A stretch of 63,541 nucleotides of DNA, counting the filler, from Reticulomyxa filosa (taxonomy: Eukaryota > Protista > Foraminifera): NCBI GenBank assembly GCA_000512085.1. It is 15 parts of 15 records of this genome, joined end to end, with 100 filler letters (N's around TTAATTAATTAA, not from the genome) between each part and the next. Parts side by side here need not be neighbours in the genome. Positions count along the whole stretch, not along the records: positions 41,985 to 58,434 come from ASPP01010817.1; 14 more parts are not named here. The stretch is one strand, 5' to 3'. Under the pieces are notes generated by a model. That model worked only from the letters and a program-made list of their open reading frames with translations, was not told where the DNA came from and searched no databases. Made by a program: the position numbers and the translations under genes. Below are positions 42,030-58,589 of this stretch, one piece after another (positions within the stretch are counted from its first letter, which is position 1; each line of letters opens with the position of its first letter).

Positions 42030-44159
42030 CCTGGCATTCGGAGAACCATTTCTTCCAACGTCCATAACTGTTTGCGGCAATTGCGCCGCTATTGATCGCA
42101 AGACGTGCAACACCACTCTTGGCCTATGCGTGGGTTGTCCAAGTCCCAATTGGGAGGCTTGCAATGTTTCGTTTCTTTGTCCGCCTTTGCAACACAACAA
42201 AAACAATATAATAATAAATATATATATAAACATATATGTATATACATATATACATATATTTATTTATTTATTATTGTTGTTGTTATAAACAGTATGCCAA
42301 AGAGCCCAGTTGCATGACCAAAGCACCCTTGGCCACTTGTACAAACGGCCTAACCCCAACTTGGGCTCCGACATCTCTGCCGACAAAAATGCCTACGACC
42401 AAAGTGCCGACCAAAGTACCGACCAAACGTCCGACCAAGCGTCCCACCAAGCGTCCTACCAAACGACCGACCACCAAACAGCCATCGAAATCGCCGACGC
42501 GAATACCCACAAAGGTTCCAACGAAGCCACCAACTGCAATGCCAACCAAATTGCCAACTAAAATTCCGAGCGTGTCTCCCACGCTATGGCCGACCAAAAT
42601 TCCGACCGTGCCTCCCACGCTGCGGCCGACCAAAATTCCGACCGTACCTCCAACGCTGCGGCCGACCAAAATTCCGACGTTGAACCCCACCCTGTTTGTC
42701 ATCAACTTTCCAACAGCTCATCCCGTTGCCAGCACTACTAAAGGCCCCACGCAATCTCCCTCGACAAGCCAAGCCGGTGCTGTTGGCTGCATCCCGTCGA
42801 CGAGACAAAGCCCAGCGACTTGGTTGCCTCTCTCCATCACCACACCGGGAACCATTGTTGGCATCGAACTCCATCGGACTTCGGGTTCTTTCGACGTGGA
42901 CCAACAGCCGGCTTTTTGGGGCACCAAACGAACAGACCAAGATTTGTTTGGCATTTTTGTTACGGATAGTAATGACAATGTTTTATATCCAACGAAGTTT
43001 GTCAATTGTTTCATTTATACATATATATACATATATGTATATGTACATATATGTATATATATACATATACACATATATATTTGTCTAAGATTTGATAAAA
43101 CAAAAATAAAATCTGCAATGCATGTGAATGCCCTCCTTTAGCAATACATTGCATTATTATCCTTTTTCACAAGAGTGGTACAGATTGTACCAACAAGACA
43201 CCAACGAATCTGTGTTGCAATTGGAGCAGCCTGCAATCAGCGTTTCTCAAGTACCAACGTTTTGGAAGCTTTATTTAGGGGAAGTGTTGTTCAACATCAA
43301 TGTAACTGGAAACAAAGGATCCACTTGTGTGAAGGCGTATCTCATGTACCAACAACAACAAGGACAAGTATCACTGATCGGACCACGCAGTATCAGTTAT
43401 TGTGTACTTTTTTTTTTTTTTTTCCATTACATATCACTCAAAAAAAATGGAGAAGGTAGGAGAAATGTAAAGTGAAATGCAAATGAACGTATATCTATTT
43501 ACACTGTGCGTCTTACAGCACGAAAAGAAGGACCGAAATGGAGTCCTTTGAGTCAGATATGTATACCCGGCAAGAAGGGAATGGATTCAAGCATATTTCC
43601 GCATGGCTTCAACGTGTCGTCCATCGGAGGATTTGCAGAAATTATCATGCCCGTCAATGAATGGATTTATGGATTGCGTTTTGTCTATCATTCAGGACCC
43701 GGCATCAGCGAGCATAATGTGTCTTGCAATTGGGGCTCGAGTATCAGTCATTCCTTTGGAATTGATGTCATCGATCCTTTTGAAAATATCATTGTCTTTC
43801 CAAATCCGTTAATTTATACATACGTATACACATATACACATACATACGTGTATATACGTATGTGTGTAGTAATATAAAAATTCAAAGCTTATATTTCAAA
43901 TATAACACACATATAAAGACGTACAATTGGATATTCTCCTTGCGATAAACAAACATTTGCCAATTATTGTATAAAGGATGCAGATCCGTGCGCAAGTCAG
44001 CTCACCCTCACACAACTTGTGAGTCCAATCTACTTTGACAAAGAGCATCTATTGCAAGTTTATTTCAGTAGCGTATTTAACGAAGACCTCACATCCACAC
44101 GTAACGTATTCGGATACACTTGTGCACGAGTTGAGGTTTTGTCATCCTCCAAGCAATGA
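42030..44159 (+). CDS. Mucin-like (PT-repeat) extracellular protein with Cys-rich segment and two tandem C-terminal beta-rich domains; multi-exon, 5'-partial
   Basis: PTKR/PTKI/PTVP tetrapeptide repeats at 42355-42700, TA-rich introns, and two related domains ending GSTCVKAYLMY and GYTCARVEVLSSSKQ* (TGA 44157-44159). Confidence 0.75.
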
Positions 44160-47622: not shown

Positions 47623-48943
47623 TTAAATCCTTGACAAGACGTTAGTCCGATTTGGCAACTTGTAAAATCCACCAACGGACATAGCAATTCCAACCAAACT
47701 TAAAGGAATCATTTTCCATTTTAAATCCCACTTTTTCAACTGCATGGGATCACTATGAACAGCAACCGACTGTTTCGCGATTACCACCTTACTTGCATAT
47801 TCTTTCAAAGGCGTATTTGTTTCAGTCTTTTCACGTTGCGTTTGGCTGTGTGATGAATGTGTAGAGTTTTGTCCAGTTGTTTTATCACGTGACGCATTAT
47901 TCGATTCACTATTGCCGTTACCATTTCCACTATCGGTTTCATCTTTTACATCAGAACTATCCAAGTGATCCATCTCTTTGCGAGTCGTATCGTCTTTGCG
48001 CAAATGTTGTGTTATATGTGTCAAACTTGCGCTGAATGGGCTGTTGAATAAAAACCGAATGCTAAATTCACTGTGAAAATACAACACCCACGCACACCAC
48101 AACACACAATTTTTTTGATTTTTTAGTTTTTAGTTTTTAGTTTTTTTAATTTGCGTATGTGTGCAAAAAAAAAAAAAAAGATTTCTTAGAAATACCTGTA
48201 AACACCACCATTGACATGTTGGGAAATAAACAAACTGCATCGAATGCAACCAATGTTGATGTCCTCATGAATAGAGCGACTGACAAATGAAACAAAAGGA
48301 TATTTGGTTGAAGCATTTTTGAACACTTCGGGGTTTGGAAATCCCAAAGTATTATACAATAACTCCACACTGCTCCAGCTTTTGTAAAATATCAATGCAA
48401 AACCCATTTGTGTGCCTAAATTCACAAACAAGTCATTTATTTTTTGCCGTACCTTTCTTTTTTTTTTTGATATTTATGTTTTTTTTTTCAAAAATGATGG
48501 CAAAAAATGTTCTTTTTCTCTCCCCTCTTTTACTCTTCTTTACCTTCAATGTGAGGTCTTAAGAATACGTTGGCCCCTAAAACGGGCAATACCCCTTGAA
48601 AACCGGGCATAAATTGGTTGGCGATGTTTTGAATTAACGTTGCTACGTCCGGGTGAAGTAGCGAATGCGTGGCGATGCTTTGACGAATCGTGCGGATCAC
48701 ATCTTCAACTCGAAGATCAATTACGCCTTTTTGACCCACATATGTCGTCCAATAGACACGCAACTGCCCATTGGAATATCCCAACGACAAATCCCCAACT
48801 TGCAAAGGGTCTTTCACTCCTGGCACATACCGAACTTGGGTAAAACTATTTCCATCAGCTACAGCGAATAATCTAGAGCTCATATCTTGAATTCTTTTCA
48901 TCTTGTCACAAAGGTGATTTCTTTTTAGGTTAATTACCAACAA
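47623..48943 (-). CDS. Hypothetical three-exon protein with C-terminal hydrophobic anchor
   Basis: ORFs 48530-48943, 48186-48431 and 47623-48105 are separated by GT..AG T/A-rich segments; C-terminal MIPLSLVGIAMSVGGFY. Confidence 0.5.
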
Positions 48944-51364: not shown

Positions 51365-54300
51365 ATGAATTCCTTATCATCAAAACAATTTACTCTCACA
51401 AACCCATCAGACACAACAGAAAGGATTAACACCAAAGCAAGACAAAGAAGCAGTACCAAGTTACGAGCTGGAAAGTGTCACATTGAGCAAAGTTCAACCG
51501 ACGTGGCCCAAATGATAATTACCGAACGAGATTCTTTATCAGAGTACATGGACACCCCACAAGGCAATTCCTTAAAAAAGTTTCAGCAACAACAAAGGTG
51601 TGAAGTATACGTATTTTTCTTTAATAAAAAAAAGGAAATTACTTTTCTGAAAGTATTTTGTGCCGATCATTTTTTTTTTTCTTTCCTCTTTCTCGCACCC
51701 ACCTAAAAAAAAAAGTGAGGAAACCCAAAACCTGCAAGATACGAACACTGAACCGAGTCAAAACGTCAATACTAACAAAACACGTGTAGTGGCAATAAAT
51801 CCAAACAATCGTTTAAAACTCAAAAATCAGGAAAGTGATGATGGATTATTTGACGTAACAGACAGTGAGGATGATATCCAAAGCAACAACAAGAGCACGA
51901 ATAAAAACAAAAACAAAAGCACAAACAATGGTCACAACAAAGAGTATAGTAACTTTAGTAAAAAACTGATAAATCAGAATGTACCAAGCAATAAAAACAA
52001 TGGGAGAAAATTAACGATAGGAAGAGGTGAAATGAGTCTGAGCATAAGAAAAGGAGCGAATGGCAAGCAAATGAAGAATGACGTGAGCAACAGTGCTAGC
52101 GTGGACAGTGCATCTCCGCATTTGTCCAACCTAGTGTTAAGTGATCAATCTTCGTACGAGTTGGAGACAAACAGCAAAGTTAAAAGCGATGGCTATGGGA
52201 GCAGTGAAAGCGCCGTCGTTAATGACAGCTACCATAAAAAATTGAAAAAAGGTCAAAGCAATGAAAGTCAAGCCAGCATAACATTTGACTCCTTCACTCA
52301 CAAAGATCTCAGACCAGGACAAAGCAATAACATTATTTTCGCACCTATTACCAGAGAAGAGCACAAACGGCAGTCATGGATTCATGCCCCTCAAAATGGT
52401 TCTTTTTGTATCCTTTTTTCAATAATTTAAAAAAAAAAAAAAAGGGGAAAATAAAAAAAAAAAAGAAATTGACAGTGAAGAAGATTTGACAATGTCAGAA
52501 AAAGAAGAGCAATCAGGCAGACAAATTACATCGAAAGAAGAGAAGAAAGTAACAGAAGCACGTGAAGAGTCGTGGAATTTTGCAGACGATTACGACACCG
52601 TGTATGGCGAAAATACCGGAGAGAATCTGACAAGTAAGAAGAGTGGCAGTGGATTGAGTAGTAGTCAATTGAAAAAAGCAAACAAAGACAAAACCGCAGT
52701 GATCGACTCTTCGACAAATGAGTCGAAGGTCGGTCTCCAGCCAATGACAGGCGAGAAACAGAATGTGGGCATCACACAAGGCAAAGACGAATTTCTGGAC
52801 GTTGACGAGGACGTAGAACGTAGTTCGTTTGCGACACTTGGCAACGAAGGGAGAACGGTGAAGTATGACTTGGTCTATTTAACGTCCTCGCCATTGGTAA
52901 CCAAGTCATTGACGGGGTTTACTCCGTTGGTTCAGTTGAACATCAAAGAGGAGTGCGAGCGCTTGTTCGACACACTGCAAAGCTGCGGCGTGAAGTTGAG
53001 CGTGAAGCATGAGGTGGCCACGTCCACCTCTTTGGTTACCTCTTTCATCAGCGGCTGTCGTGTCATGCACTACAGTGGACATGGGTTGCCGCAGTCCCTC
53101 ATCTTCGAAGACCGCAAAGTTATTGGTACCGATCACTTGATGAGCTGCGAATTAATCGGACGCACTTGCAAAGGTGTTAAACATGCTCCTCAGCTCGTTT
53201 TCGCGAGTGCCTGTCACAGCGAAGTTGTAGGTAAGACAGACAGAAATAAGAACATGTATCACACTTTTTCCCCAAAACATTTGTATGCGTATACATATAC
53301 ATGTATATGTATATGTTATGTACATGCATATTAAATATATTATTAATATCCAACAATAACCTAAAAAAAAAAAAAATATTAACAGGAAAGGCTTTTGTTG
53401 AAGCAGGCATAAAACACGTGATCGCAGTGAAGACAGAATTTGAATTGAATGATGACGCAGCCAGCGAATTTACCAACCATTTTTATCACGGCTTGCTGAA
53501 TGGGTACACCATCCTTGACGCGTTCAAGCAAGCCAAGAACGCCGTGAATGGAATGGCGGGCGTCGGAAAGCAAGATGAAGACAAGTTTGTATTGCTGCCC
53601 GTGGACCCGAGCGGCACCCTGCACAAGGTGACATTATTTCCCCATGGCAAGTTGGTCCAAGGAGAGCTGATAAATGACAGCGTCGCCTTGCCACCAAATA
53701 ATTTACCTCCACCTATTCCACACTTTCTTGGACGAAGTGTGGACATGGTAAAAGTGATCCAACCCATAGTCGAGAGCGGGGTCAAAATCGTGAACTTGAT
53801 GGGGTCGCAAGGGGTGGGGAAATCGGCTCTGGCGTTGATGACCGCCCGATATCTGTGCCATCGACATGTGTTCAAAGGAGGAGTGTTTTATATTGACGTG
53901 GCGAAATTAATGCCCACCCACTCGACACTGGAGTCGATGCTGATTCACACGATGAGATCGACGGAAAAATATCACGTCCTCCCCGAATCCGAGTTCTTTG
54001 CCAAAATGCATAACTTTGAGCGCTTGCTGCTCGTGTTTGACCACTTGGACAAGTTTATTCTCAAATCGACGGACGACGAGCACACGACGAATGGCGGCAG
54101 TGGGGAGGAGGATAACAACAATGGCAATGGCAACGGTAATGGCTACGATTATGACGTTGGAAATGACGGTGACGACAACGATGATGGGGACAGTGCAAAT
54201 GTCGATTACGACGACGATGAGGACAACAAGAATGATAGCAGCATCGAAAGTGATGATGCATTGGATCATGATGGAATCGAACGAAGGAAAGGAAGAGTCA

Positions 54301-55974
54301 ACGCAATGGGAAAAGGAAAAGGAACAGGAAAGGGAAGAACAAAGGGATCTCCTCAACGAGGTCGAATTGGCGGTGGACGATCTGGCCGTCGTTGCCAACA
54401 ACAACAGCAACGAACTAAACATCAAAATAACCGCGTTATATCCAAAAAAACCATCCAACGGACCAGCGAAGCTATCAAGTCTTTTTTCAGTACTGTGTTC
54501 GACTTGACCCGAACGGAAATCAAAGTGCTGGTCGTGTCGACGGACAAACGACACGAACTTAGTGATATTCGCGGGGGTATGATTCGCTATCAAGCTTTGC
54601 AAGAGCTTTCGTCGGAAGATTCCGCCAAACTTTTTTCACGCTTGGCCAATCAATTTCGATGGAAGGATGTCTATTCTCATGAAGAATTAATGACGTTGCT
54701 GCAAAATAACCCTTCCAAAATCCATAAAATCGCCCAATTGAAACATGCCTTTGAATGCCAAGATTTGAGGACGGTTGTTGAATCTTACAGCATTAAACAC
54801 AACTTGGAACATCGATTTCGTAAGAATGGCGCATTTTCACGTGATGGCGCTAGGCACAAATCTCGAGGCCATCGCCATCCCACCAATACTAACCTCAATG
54901 CCAAACCCAATGCCAATGTCAATGTTAATAATATTACTATCAATAACAATGGCAATATCAATAACAATGGCAATATCAATGCCAATACCAATATCAATGT
55001 CAATGACGGTGCTAACACAAATCTAAACCGACGTGAAAGTAAAATGGAAATCCAAAAATTCCGTGAAAAACAACGTCTTTTGGTGGAAAAACATATCAAT
55101 GATTTAAACGCACGCAAAATGTGGATCAATGCGAACGGTTCGAATACTGTTCCATTCAAGGCGATATTTGAACAATTGCGGAACAATTTAAAACTTATTT
55201 CGTCTGCACGTCCATTGAAAGAAGTCGACATAATTGAACTTTTTCAACCAAAATTGGATCGATATGATAATTTGAGCATTGAGAATTTTGAAAATTTATA
55301 TTCTTGGTTTGAAGGCATCTGTCTTTTAATTGCCACTCTAAAAGAGTTATGGGTAGATACCAATCCTGTCAGAATCCAAGGTTTTATTGGTCGCGTCAAT
55401 GCGGAGAAGAAATTGCAAGTTTGTGTTTTTTACATTTATTCATCATCACTATTTATTTAATTTTTGTTTGTTAAAAAAAAAATAGTCAGCCAAACCTGGT
55501 ACCTTTTTGATACGTTTTAGCACCACCCAGCTACGTTCTATTGTAATTTCCTACAAGGAAGATGCATCTTCCCCACAATCAGTGCAACACATCAGTGGAT
55601 TATTGGTTCAAGACAACAAATTTTTATTCAAAGGGCACGATTATTTGTTCCCGTTGTGCAGTTTCATCATCAGTTATGCTAAATTTCTCATTTGTACTGC
55701 GAAACCCAAGTCATTCCAAAAACAGAGGTATTTTGGAGTGACGCAATTTAAAGTTTTTTTATTGTTTGTCTGTTCGTTTAATTTGTTTATTTTTTCTCCA
55801 ACTCTCGTTATCACACTTTCTTTTGGTGTTATTGTTTTTTTAAATTTTTTTTTGTTTGATGGTCCCGAAAGAAAGTGTGGCAAAAGTTTTGGAAGAAAAG
55901 CTTTTTCTTTTGAATTGTTTTCTTTTGTTCATTCTTTATTACTTTTTTTTTTGTCCCTCTGTCCGTTGTCTTAG
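51365..55974 (+). CDS. CHAT (caspase-like) protease - STAND NTPase - STAT-type linker/SH2 fusion protein, at least 5 exons
   Basis: CHAT motifs VMHYSGHG (His 53080) and LVFASACHS (Cys 53212). Intron 53231-53385 joins EVVG|KAFVEAGIKHVIAV..DDAASEFTNHFYHGLLNG. Then HFLGRSVD, Walker A GSQGVGKS (53802) and Walker B LLLVFDHLD. Intron 55419-55485 joins LKELW..IQGFIGRVNAEKKLQ|SAKPGTFLIRFS (SH2). First exons and 3' end approximate. Confidence 0.85.
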
Positions 55975-56555: not shown

Positions 56556-58373
56556 TTATGTTGTTGTGCTATCATTTTTGTTTTGTTGGTTATCATTTGG
56601 TTCATCCTTGCCACCACTCACACTTGGATCAGTGCCAATTGAATCATCCATGCTTTCAGTATACCGAAGTGGGGGTAGCGGCAGTGATTGTAGCCGTGGT
56701 TGGACATTGCCTTGGAATCGAGACATTTTTGCAACGTTTTGGGCAAGTTCTTCATCAGTCATCTCATCATTGCCGTCAGTTTCCCTCAACGTCATTAACT
56801 CAATGCTGTGATGATAAGCGTGTCCAGAGGCAGGAGGCAAAGGAAAAGCGTCATTTTCTTGGGTATGTGAAACTTTTTGTGAGAGCAAAGGCTGTGTTTT
56901 GCCATAGGTTCCCCGAATGATTGTGTCTAACGTTGACTGGCACGAGTACGTCTCAGCATACCAACGTTCAATTCTCATATTCTCTGCTGTAACAACATCG
57001 TTGTCCCGATGTAATTCAGGCCCAACCACTGCCGCACATAAGCAAACCAAGGCTTCTTCATATTTCACGTACCATTCACAGTCTGGCGGCAAATCGGCAT
57101 CAGCATTGGTATTTCGATGAACTAGCAATTTCAGGCGTCGAAGCAGTAAAAGCATATCTTTATGAGATACTTCGCGTTGTACTTTCAGCATACGATTCTG
57201 TCGGTCTTTGTGTACAGACATTGCAAAAACTAAGCCGGAAACAATGAAAGAAAGAGGAGAAGAGGGAAAAAAAGAGTCAAACCTGACATTGGAATCATAG
57301 CAGACAATTGTCTGGACAACAGAAAGGAATTACGTTTTTGAGAACCAGATTGCTGATTTGAAGGCTTGGAAGTGGTTCGTGGCGAGGAAGCAGTGAAAGG
57401 ATACATCGACGCATGATCTTCAAACGGGGTCACTGTTATCTGTCCCGATTTGCTTTGCCTTTTTTTCTTTCGTTTCATTTTTTTAAGTTGCAACGTAAAA
57501 AGCATGAGTTTTTCAAACGGGTCTTGTGAACTGAAGCCGGTAGGTTTGGGAGTGAGTCGCAACAATGATAAAAAAATGGACGCATTAAGTTTGCCCTTGC
57601 CTTGCGGTTCAAACCATAGCCAAAGGTCTCTCCAAACTTTGATCGTTTCAAGTTTTTCTTCTCGTGCAAACGAATCTTTGTTTTCTTGAAATGAGTCCAA
57701 TACCACTGCAATGAACAAATTGATTAGCACCGCCGTTCCAAATATAAAAAAGGATATGAAAAACAGGTACACACTATATAATTGTTTGGTCCCATAATAC
57801 GCCTCCAAATAACACGCATACAAATCCGTCCAGTTATCTTGCGTTGCGACTTGATACAATAAATTAAAGCTACTTAGGAACGTATCAAAATTCGTCTACA
57901 TTTTTTTTTTTTGAGTTTTATTTATTTGTTTATTTTTTTATCCAAATTTTTTTTCAAACATTATCAAAATGAATGTTACATACGCACACAAGACAGAAAC
58001 AGCAAGTACGTATACTTATACGTATATAACATAAAAAAAAAGTATATACATATATGTACATAAATATTTAACTTCACGACGTATCGAAGGATCGATATTG
58101 GCCCCTCCAAATAAATTCATTCCAATGATGGCATAAATGAAAAAAATGACGAGCAACAATAGACCGACGTTCCAAAGTGAAGGAGCGGACTCGATTAAAG
58201 TCCAAAAGAGTATTTTCAGAGTTTGTGCTTTATTGATTAATCGCAGCAAGCGAGCAATGCGAAACAGCCGAAACACATTCAATCGAAGAGTGCTTCCACT
58301 CGCCAATCCAACGACACCAACCACAGAAATTACAAAATCGAACTTGTTCCAATGATCACTGATATAGCCCTTG
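56556..58373 (-). CDS. Voltage-gated Ca2+/Na+ channel alpha subunit, last repeat and C-terminal tail; 5'-truncated, multi-exon
   Basis: WNKFDFVI (S3), NVFRLFRIARLLRLI (S4), LWNVGLLLLVIFFIYAIIGMNLFG (S5), NFDTF..LYQVATQDNWTDL (pore), LINLFIAVVLDSF (S6) and an EF-hand-like WLWFEPQGKGKL..LLRLTPKPTGF. Confidence 0.92.
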
Positions 58374-58589
58374 GTTTATGTGTGTATGTGTGGAGATGGA
58401 TAAAAGGGAGATAACAAACAAATAAACAAACAAANNNNNNNNNNNNNNNNNNNNNNNNNNNNNNNNNNNNNNNNNNNNTTAATTAATTAANNNNNNNNNN
58501 NNNNNNNNNNNNNNNNNNNNNNNNNNNNNNNNNNATGTGTAGGCAAAATGGATGGTCCTTCAATCAACCACGCTCAAGACGGATGAACA

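Follow-up and report, generated by a model that had tools for sequence, protein, structure and literature searches.

A CHAT protease, a STAND-type NTPase and a STAT-linked SH2 domain predicted in one chain in Reticulomyxa filosa and other SAR protists

The gene examined here lies in a window (the whole stretch of DNA that was analysed, 63,541 nucleotides in 15 joined parts) from a foraminiferan genome, that of Reticulomyxa filosa (GCA_000512085.1), within the part that comes from ASPP01010817.1. A preliminary description of positions 51365–55974 had proposed that a CHAT protease, a STAND NTPase and a STAT-type SH2 domain are fused there in an NLR-like protein, possibly gated by phosphotyrosine (pTyr). 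This raises the question of whether the three domains belong to one gene and, if so, what kind of protein it would encode. The plus strand at 51365–55751 was found to hold a five-exon gene with CHAT protease, STAND-type NTPase and SH2 in one chain. The architecture is conserved and apparently undescribed, and it suggests a possible direct route from tyrosine phosphorylation to the activation of a protease in these cells.

One gene encodes the three domains

For domain assignment, Pfam and database searches were run on single exons or on database proteins. With Pfam, exon 3 matched Peptidase_C14 (E 5e-5) and exon 5 matched SH2 (E 3.2e-5), both above cut-off, while exon 4 gave CHAT (5.6e-5), NACHT (1.6e-4) and NB-ARC (5.6e-3), all three below cut-off. 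The gene is laid out as follows.

51365–51610, plus strand: probable exon 1, disordered N-terminus; donor at 51597, 51604 or 51610; same layout in paralogue L002
51716–52407, plus strand: probable exon 2, low-complexity; both ends uncertain by a few bases
52466–53230, plus strand: exon 3, an acidic spacer and then the N-terminal half of CHAT from 52855; acceptor at 52466 or 52481
52573–52605, plus strand: Trp/Tyr island, W-N-x-x-D-D-Y-x-x-x-Y in acidic surroundings; candidate phosphosite
53231–53385, plus strand: CHAT intron, phase 1, GT–AG, directly behind the Cys motif; position shared by both paralogues
53386–53640, plus strand: start of exon 4, C-terminal half of CHAT
53697–54560, plus strand: STAND-type NTPase, nucleotide-binding domain (NBD); pre-P-loop GR, Walker A Lys 53820, Walker B Asp 54039, sensor-1 strand at ~54522
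54063–54438, plus strand: insert in the NBD, Asp/Asn/Gly-rich and unconserved
54561–54800, plus strand: helical domain 1 (HD1), with NNP as the GxP equivalent at 54705; winged-helix domain absent after it
54801–55060, plus strand: variable spacer, Asn-rich
55100–55418, plus strand: STAT-type linker (EF-hand-like) and SH2 helix alphaA, with Arg alphaA2 at 55392; closes exon 4
55419–55485, plus strand: SH2 intron, phase 0, GT–AG, inside SH2; same position in both paralogues
55486–55751, plus strand: exon 5, the remaining SH2 (betaB5 Arg 55513) and C-terminal tail; stop 55749–55751

All motifs quoted in the preliminary description were located in place on the plus strand. The two junctions it had predicted, 53230/53386 (phase 1) and 55418/55486 (phase 0), are GT–AG, in frame and phase-compatible, and the same codons are split in two R. 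filosa paralogues; the donor of the CHAT intron is GC in paralogue L002. These paralogues, RFI_03936 (locus L001) and RFI_09060 (locus L002), are the closest database relatives, with 75 and 73% identity over the CHAT–NTPase stretch, respectively. An SH2 exon lies downstream in both loci (L001 3260–3520, L002 9305–9586), and both NCBI models read into the SH2 intron (L001 3148–3259, L002 9199–9304), stop, and miss the last exon. Because the gene models terminate inside this intron, SH2 is invisible in the Reticulomyxa annotation. In addition, some of the CHAT intron is translated in the RFI_03936 model, and that of RFI_09060 omits the Cys motif at a GC–AG intron near L002 7416.

A profile of 704 positions was built from single-chain homologues outside Reticulomyxa; several single-chain homologues come from transcriptome-type sources. 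Exons 3, 4 and 5 cover positions 1–123, 125–619 and 621–684 of this profile, tiling it without gap or overlap, and in the Nonionella protein P0005 exon 4 ends at residue 720 and exon 5 picks up in register at 721. Together with the introns at the same codons in the paralogues, the single-chain homologues and tiling exons support one gene, as had been proposed, and they rule out three separate genes. Comparison of the window with the paralogues indicated that purifying selection acts on every domain, SH2 exon included, nonsynonymous differences per site (pN) being 0.13–0.29 against near-saturated synonymous differences (pS) of 0.68–0.83.

The assignment of exons 1 and 2 is less certain than that of exons 3–5. 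It draws on the N-terminal layout of paralogue L002, which has three exons as in the window gene, and on two short islands that exon 2 has in common with RFI_09060 (pairwise E 3e-5 and 2e-4). Many homologues lack the N-terminal extension altogether. The Trp/Tyr island in exon 3 is also found in RFI_03936, with 7 of 12 residues identical (pairwise E 0.003), and is absent from RFI_09060; its Tyr pair is a possible phosphosite and self-ligand, a weak lead.

At the 3' end, the terminus at 55974 given previously was rejected: it belongs to a frame-shifted open reading frame that runs into T-rich 3' sequence (55% T). The stop that matches the paralogues is the TAA at 55749–55751, which can be reached only across a one-base gap: where both paralogues have a base between positions 55686 and 55687, beside a run of T, the window has none. 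Read in the paralogue frame, the 20 codons 3' of the gap share 85% identity with L001 (pN 0.06, pS 0.48). A homopolymer error in the assembly would explain the gap; failing that, it is a lesion that arose very recently.

CHAT protease

A caspase-like fold is supported by the Peptidase_C14 and CHAT matches on exons 3 and 4, and CHAT scored above cut-off in the paralogues and homologues. The intact dyad claimed for this domain was confirmed in the window, with the catalytic codons at 53080 (His) and 53212 (Cys). Across the family alignment the His is kept in 35 of 37 sequences and the Cys in 34 of 38; proteolytic activity is predicted. For structural comparison an AlphaFold model of the homologue P0007, not of the window product, was used (43 sequences; predicted local distance difference test (pLDDT) 91, predicted template modelling score (pTM) 0.69). 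The best structural match of its CHAT domain is the SAVED-CHAT of 8TL0, an activated filament (Z 21.1, root-mean-square deviation (rmsd) 2.3), which the sequence profile also matched with E 8e-15.

STAND NTPase without a winged helix

The P-loop residues of a STAND-type NTPase are in place, as expected from the preliminary description, and NACHT and NB-ARC matches were obtained in the window gene, its paralogues and homologues. In the family alignment the Walker A Lys is present in 41 of 41 sequences, the Walker B Asp in 40 of 42 and the pre-P-loop GR in 98–100%. The GxP motif of HD1 keeps its Pro in 98% and its Gly in 63% (NNP in foraminifera), and the sensor-1 Arg is poorly conserved (29%). 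In the P0007 model, NTPase and HD1 superimpose on Apaf-1 residues 112–356 (Z 16.4).

Beyond HD1 the winged-helix domain (WHD) is absent: no strand is placed in the model anywhere from residue 404 to 522, and the Apaf-1 alignment stops at HD1. Some NLR alignments reach into the linker, with no gain in aligned residues. Across the family, 43–243 residues separate the linker Trp from the GxP Pro, and in some members as few as 43–48. In NLRs the winged helix carries the ADP-holding MHD motif and forms one of the two ring interfaces (PMC8813719). Judged from alignment and model, the STAND unit ends after HD1, without a winged-helix/MHD lock. A repeat sensor was not seen either, there being no Pfam matches to LRR, WD40, TPR or ankyrin repeats in the window gene or its homologues; linker-SH2 stands there instead. 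The term NLR-like thus holds for the effector–NTPase–sensor order, but not for the winged helix/MHD lock or the repeat sensor, and because the winged helix with its MHD motif is missing, the protein is not a canonical NLR switch. The family is a natural experiment on how a STAND switch may run without the winged-helix lock.

STAT linker-SH2 module

For the C-terminal module, a profile of 33 sequences matched Dictyostelium STATa (1UUR) with E 3.6e-29 over linker, SH2 and tail, and STAT5B/6 with E ~5e-25. Pfam STAT_linker was found in 4 of the 33 members (best 2.4e-6), and the tail of window exon 4 scored 65.7 bits on the module profile. The C-terminus of the P0007 model aligned with STATa residues 490–692 (Z 16.3, rmsd 3.1). 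Two residues described as critical for the pTyr pocket, the betaB5 Arg and the alphaA2 Arg/Lys (PMC6895964), are kept in 37 of 38 and 38 of 41 sequences, respectively; the window copy has betaB5 Arg 55513, alphaA2 Arg 55392 and a Ser/Thr following the betaB5 Arg. The suggestion of a STAT linker and SH2 with the pTyr-binding Arg retained, sitting at the sensor slot of the STAND order, is therefore well founded.

The further label STAT-type fits in part. The linker before SH2 and the profile match to STATa agree with it, but the model has a betaE/betaF hairpin, and a STAT-type SH2 is defined by an alphaB' helix in place of betaE/betaF (PMC6895964). The hairpin consists of two short strands (663–666 and 669–672) between betaD and alphaB in P0007, and the exon 5 profile aligns with Src SH2 through it. 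On alignment and model, the SH2 is STAT-linked but hybrid, with a Src-like hairpin. A Tyr downstream of SH2 is absent in 21 of 33 complete members and in the window copy, so STAT-like tail dimerization was rejected as a general mechanism.

Other candidates for the module were set aside. A purely Src-type module proved to be an artefact of a three-sequence profile and was overturned by the 33-sequence profile. A Cbl-type module was rejected, since Cbl_N3 was weak (best 0.0012) and the top 60 PDB matches did not include Cbl. A fold of the exon 4 tail from the single sequence (pLDDT 54) was not used.

Family and its spread

A profile search of 1.84 billion representatives returned 4007 matches at E 0.001. 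The C-terminal module was present in 40 of the best 150 database clusters, and the majority of these have it in one chain with CHAT and NTPase; each of the ten homologues scanned with Pfam (10/10) had matches to CHAT, an NTPase family and SH2. Named members come from Nonionella stella, Bolivina argentea, Saprolegnia diclina (SDRG_08366), Norrisiella sphaerica, Partenskyella glossopodia and Mataza sp.; every named source belongs to Rhizaria or Stramenopiles. The majority of members, however, are from unnamed samples and have eukaryotic genes next to them (PCI, V-ATPase, clathrin light chain, UBR1). The high-GC, intron-less homologues P0053 and P0081 (loci L003 and L004) keep a convergent PCI-domain gene as neighbour. 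To the question, left open previously, of whether the architecture occurs in other lineages of the stramenopiles, alveolates and rhizarians (SAR), the answer is that it recurs in foraminifera, other rhizarians and a water mould.

In a FastTree phylogeny of the CHAT–NTPase core, all 36 of the 36 SH2-bearing members fell in one clade of 57 leaves (support 0.85, midpoint root), several of its SH2-less leaves being fragments, and the foraminiferan proteins clustered together (support 0.98). The core tree is consistent with a single origin followed by losses, and the family looks conserved and low-copy. Sister CHAT–NTPase cores are joined to TPR, PAS, receiver, kinase-LRR, SPRY, SAM and PB1 domains; because they carry so many different fused domains, the core appears to be a reusable signalling output. 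Individual examples are P0021 (receiver), P0030 (SPRY), P0075 (PB1, a second NB-ARC and TPR), P0090 (SAM, TPR and KH), P0104 (PAS) and P0122 (LRR-kinase), which suggest a wider protist CHAT-STAND radiation.

The ESM Atlas returned bacterial CHAT-STAND clusters and one oomycete FHA cluster, none of which lists SH2. The latter, matched by P0076, is a 60-member oomycete cluster annotated as FHA domain-containing protein (feature score 0.85); as a lead, it would be a second phospho-reader fusion if it has the CHAT–NTPase core. A metagenome scan yielded one partial CHAT–NTPase locus. An NCBIfam scan, single-exon PDB searches, word searches with the pre-SH2 stretch and exon 5 alignment led nowhere. 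Full-text searches found no description of CHAT, STAND and SH2 in combination. Since these searches covered few subscription journals and automatic annotation shows the combination, it may have been mentioned elsewhere: UniRef calls the Saprolegnia protein an 'SH2 domain-containing protein', and two contigs carry Pfam annotations of CHAT, NACHT and SH2.

Proposed function and alternative readings

From alignments and model, we consider it about an even chance that these proteins are pTyr-recruited, ATP-assisted, proximity-activated signalling proteases of SAR protists. The SH2 would dock on a tyrosine-phosphorylated partner, such as a receptor-like kinase or scaffold, and this docking would cluster or unlock protomers. 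ATP-bound NTPases would then associate, probably via an NBD–NBD surface because the HD1–WHD surface is missing, and proximity would activate the CHAT protease to cleave a downstream target. Proximity activation is established for caspase-fold proteases. What the ADP lock and the repeat sensor do in NLRs would both fall to the linker-SH2. Kinases that could supply the signal are documented for oomycetes, with two tyrosine kinases, 139 tyrosine kinase-like proteins and four SH2 proteins (PMC3019232).

Several observations weigh against this proposal. Without a WHD, the protein lacks the ADP lock known from NLRs as well as one of the two ring interfaces (PMC8813719), so the NLR activation scheme cannot be transferred directly. 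The foraminiferan proteins P0005, P0008 and P0009 have lost the catalytic Cys (P0008 the His also) and retained the NTPase, which hints that they are candidate regulatory pseudo-proteases. The documentation of kinases by which the signal was argued covers oomycetes, not Rhizaria; pTyr binding, oligomerization and protease activity are predictions; and the window copy has its one-base gap in the C-terminus of SH2.

The absent WHD/MHD lock leads to another possibility, in which SH2 is a targeting arm and not a gate: the protease would be brought to tyrosine-phosphorylated substrates and end the signal by cleaving them, with the lock-less NTPase a constitutive scaffold or switched by another cue. 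A sensor-1 Arg conserved in so few members agrees with this, as does a spacer long and variable enough for a tether and, with pTM at 0.69, a domain packing loosely defined in the model. The shortest spacers, however, are ~45 residues, and the invariant P-loop suggests coupled nucleotide use; we regard a targeting arm as unlikely. A strict NLR-like immune or death receptor, sensing infection-linked tyrosine phosphorylation and forming an apoptosome-like ring that leads to death, would share the effector–NTPase–sensor order, structural kinship with Apaf-1, CED-4 and resistosomes, and nearest folds among bacterial CHAT-STAND clusters. It would have to do without WHD and repeat sensor, though, and there was no PADLOC match; no defence-gene neighbourhood was seen in the window or in seven homologous loci, where neighbours are housekeeping or unannotated genes; and strong purifying selection, not rapid diversification, was observed. 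With PADLOC, neighbours and selection offering no specific support for an immune or death role, such a receptor seems quite improbable.

The proposal also assumes that the ligand is pTyr. Dedicated tyrosine kinases are rare outside animals, with two in Phytophthora infestans (PMC3019232), and the four closest foraminiferan homologues have an FRY motif without Ser after betaB5, which would suit an SH2 that reads phospho-Ser/Thr, a lipid phosphate or an unmodified partner. Yet almost the whole alignment keeps the betaB5 Arg and an Arg/Lys at alphaA2, residues described as critical in the pTyr pocket (PMC6895964), and the window copy keeps Ser/Thr after the Arg, so that a ligand other than pTyr is very hard to credit. 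A different concern is that the family is real but the window copy is a recent pseudogene, or encodes a protein with a damaged SH2 end, since the gap is present in the assembled sequence and in neither paralogue. The identity of the post-gap codons to L001 and their low pN relative to pS mean, however, that selection still acted on them until very recently; the gap lies beside a T run, as is typical of homopolymer errors; and the other exons are all stop-free with catalytic residues intact. Damage to this copy is accordingly judged improbable.

The pTyr-recruited protease could be taken further, to ancient SAR-wide receptors in which pTyr binding by a STAT linker-SH2 replaces winged-helix lock and repeat sensor and triggers an in-cis caspase-like protease; this extension is doubtful, though if true it would amount to a one-protein 'phosphotyrosine apoptosome' outside animals and amoebozoans. 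The family offers an assayable output in the form of a protease whose conservation spans foraminifera, chlorarachniophytes and an oomycete.

Neighbouring genes in the window

Three further genes were seen near the locus:

42236–43900, plus strand: gene for a probable surface protein, whose PT repeat stalk is rich in Pro, Thr and Lys (Pfam PT, E 6e-12)
47623–48943, minus strand: divergent multi-exon gene, ~2.4 kb upstream, for which no Pfam match above cut-off was found
56556–58434, minus strand: convergent channel gene of the voltage-gated Ion_trans type, of which the 3' part is present; two of its exons match in Pfam (E 3e-16 and 2e-9)

Comparison with known systems

Prokaryotic CHAT-STAND (NB-ARC/NACHT/nSTAND)-TPR proteins such as P0003, P0025 and P0034 likewise place an N-terminal CHAT directly before the STAND NTPase. 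P0003 is 35% identical over the CHAT–NTPase stretch, and a cyanobacterial CHAT-STAND cluster gave the best whole-core fold match (TM 0.57 over 437 residues). The prokaryotic proteins run on into TPR, WD40 or FGE-sulfatase sensors, whereas the protein studied here continues from the end of HD1 into linker-SH2 and is encoded by a spliced eukaryotic gene. Prokaryotic anti-phage STAND systems (Avs and related) differ in their defence-island context, which is absent here, in line with the lack of a PADLOC match. The closest solved CHAT fold, the SAVED-CHAT of type III CRISPR (8TL0), is also sensor-fused and was solved as an activated filament, but has neither NTPase nor SH2; SAVED is a reader of cyclic oligonucleotides.

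Apaf-1, CED-4 and the plant and animal NLRs have the same effector–NTPase–sensor order, a matching NBD and HD1 and a caspase-fold output. Unlike the present protein they possess a winged helix, MHD lock, HD2 and repeats, and their protease is recruited via a death-fold adaptor, whereas here it is in cis. STAT proteins (STATa 1UUR, STAT5, STAT6) share the linker, SH2 and a C-terminal LYP..PK..F-like tail; their coiled-coil and DNA-binding domains are absent here, the STAT match being confined to linker-SH2. The window gene accordingly has a CHAT domain, a STAND NBD with HD1 and a STAT-linked SH2, and is not an NLR, a STAT or the bearer of a strict STAT-type SH2.

Linker-SH2 fusions outside STATs exist in the Dictyostelium SHK kinases, LrrB and plant STAT-like proteins, in which a portable STAT linker-SH2 module sits on an unrelated catalytic or scaffold domain. 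We know of none joined to a protease or STAND NTPase. In the family described here, the STAT linker-SH2 would have moved as a unit into a bacterial-type CHAT-STAND scaffold.

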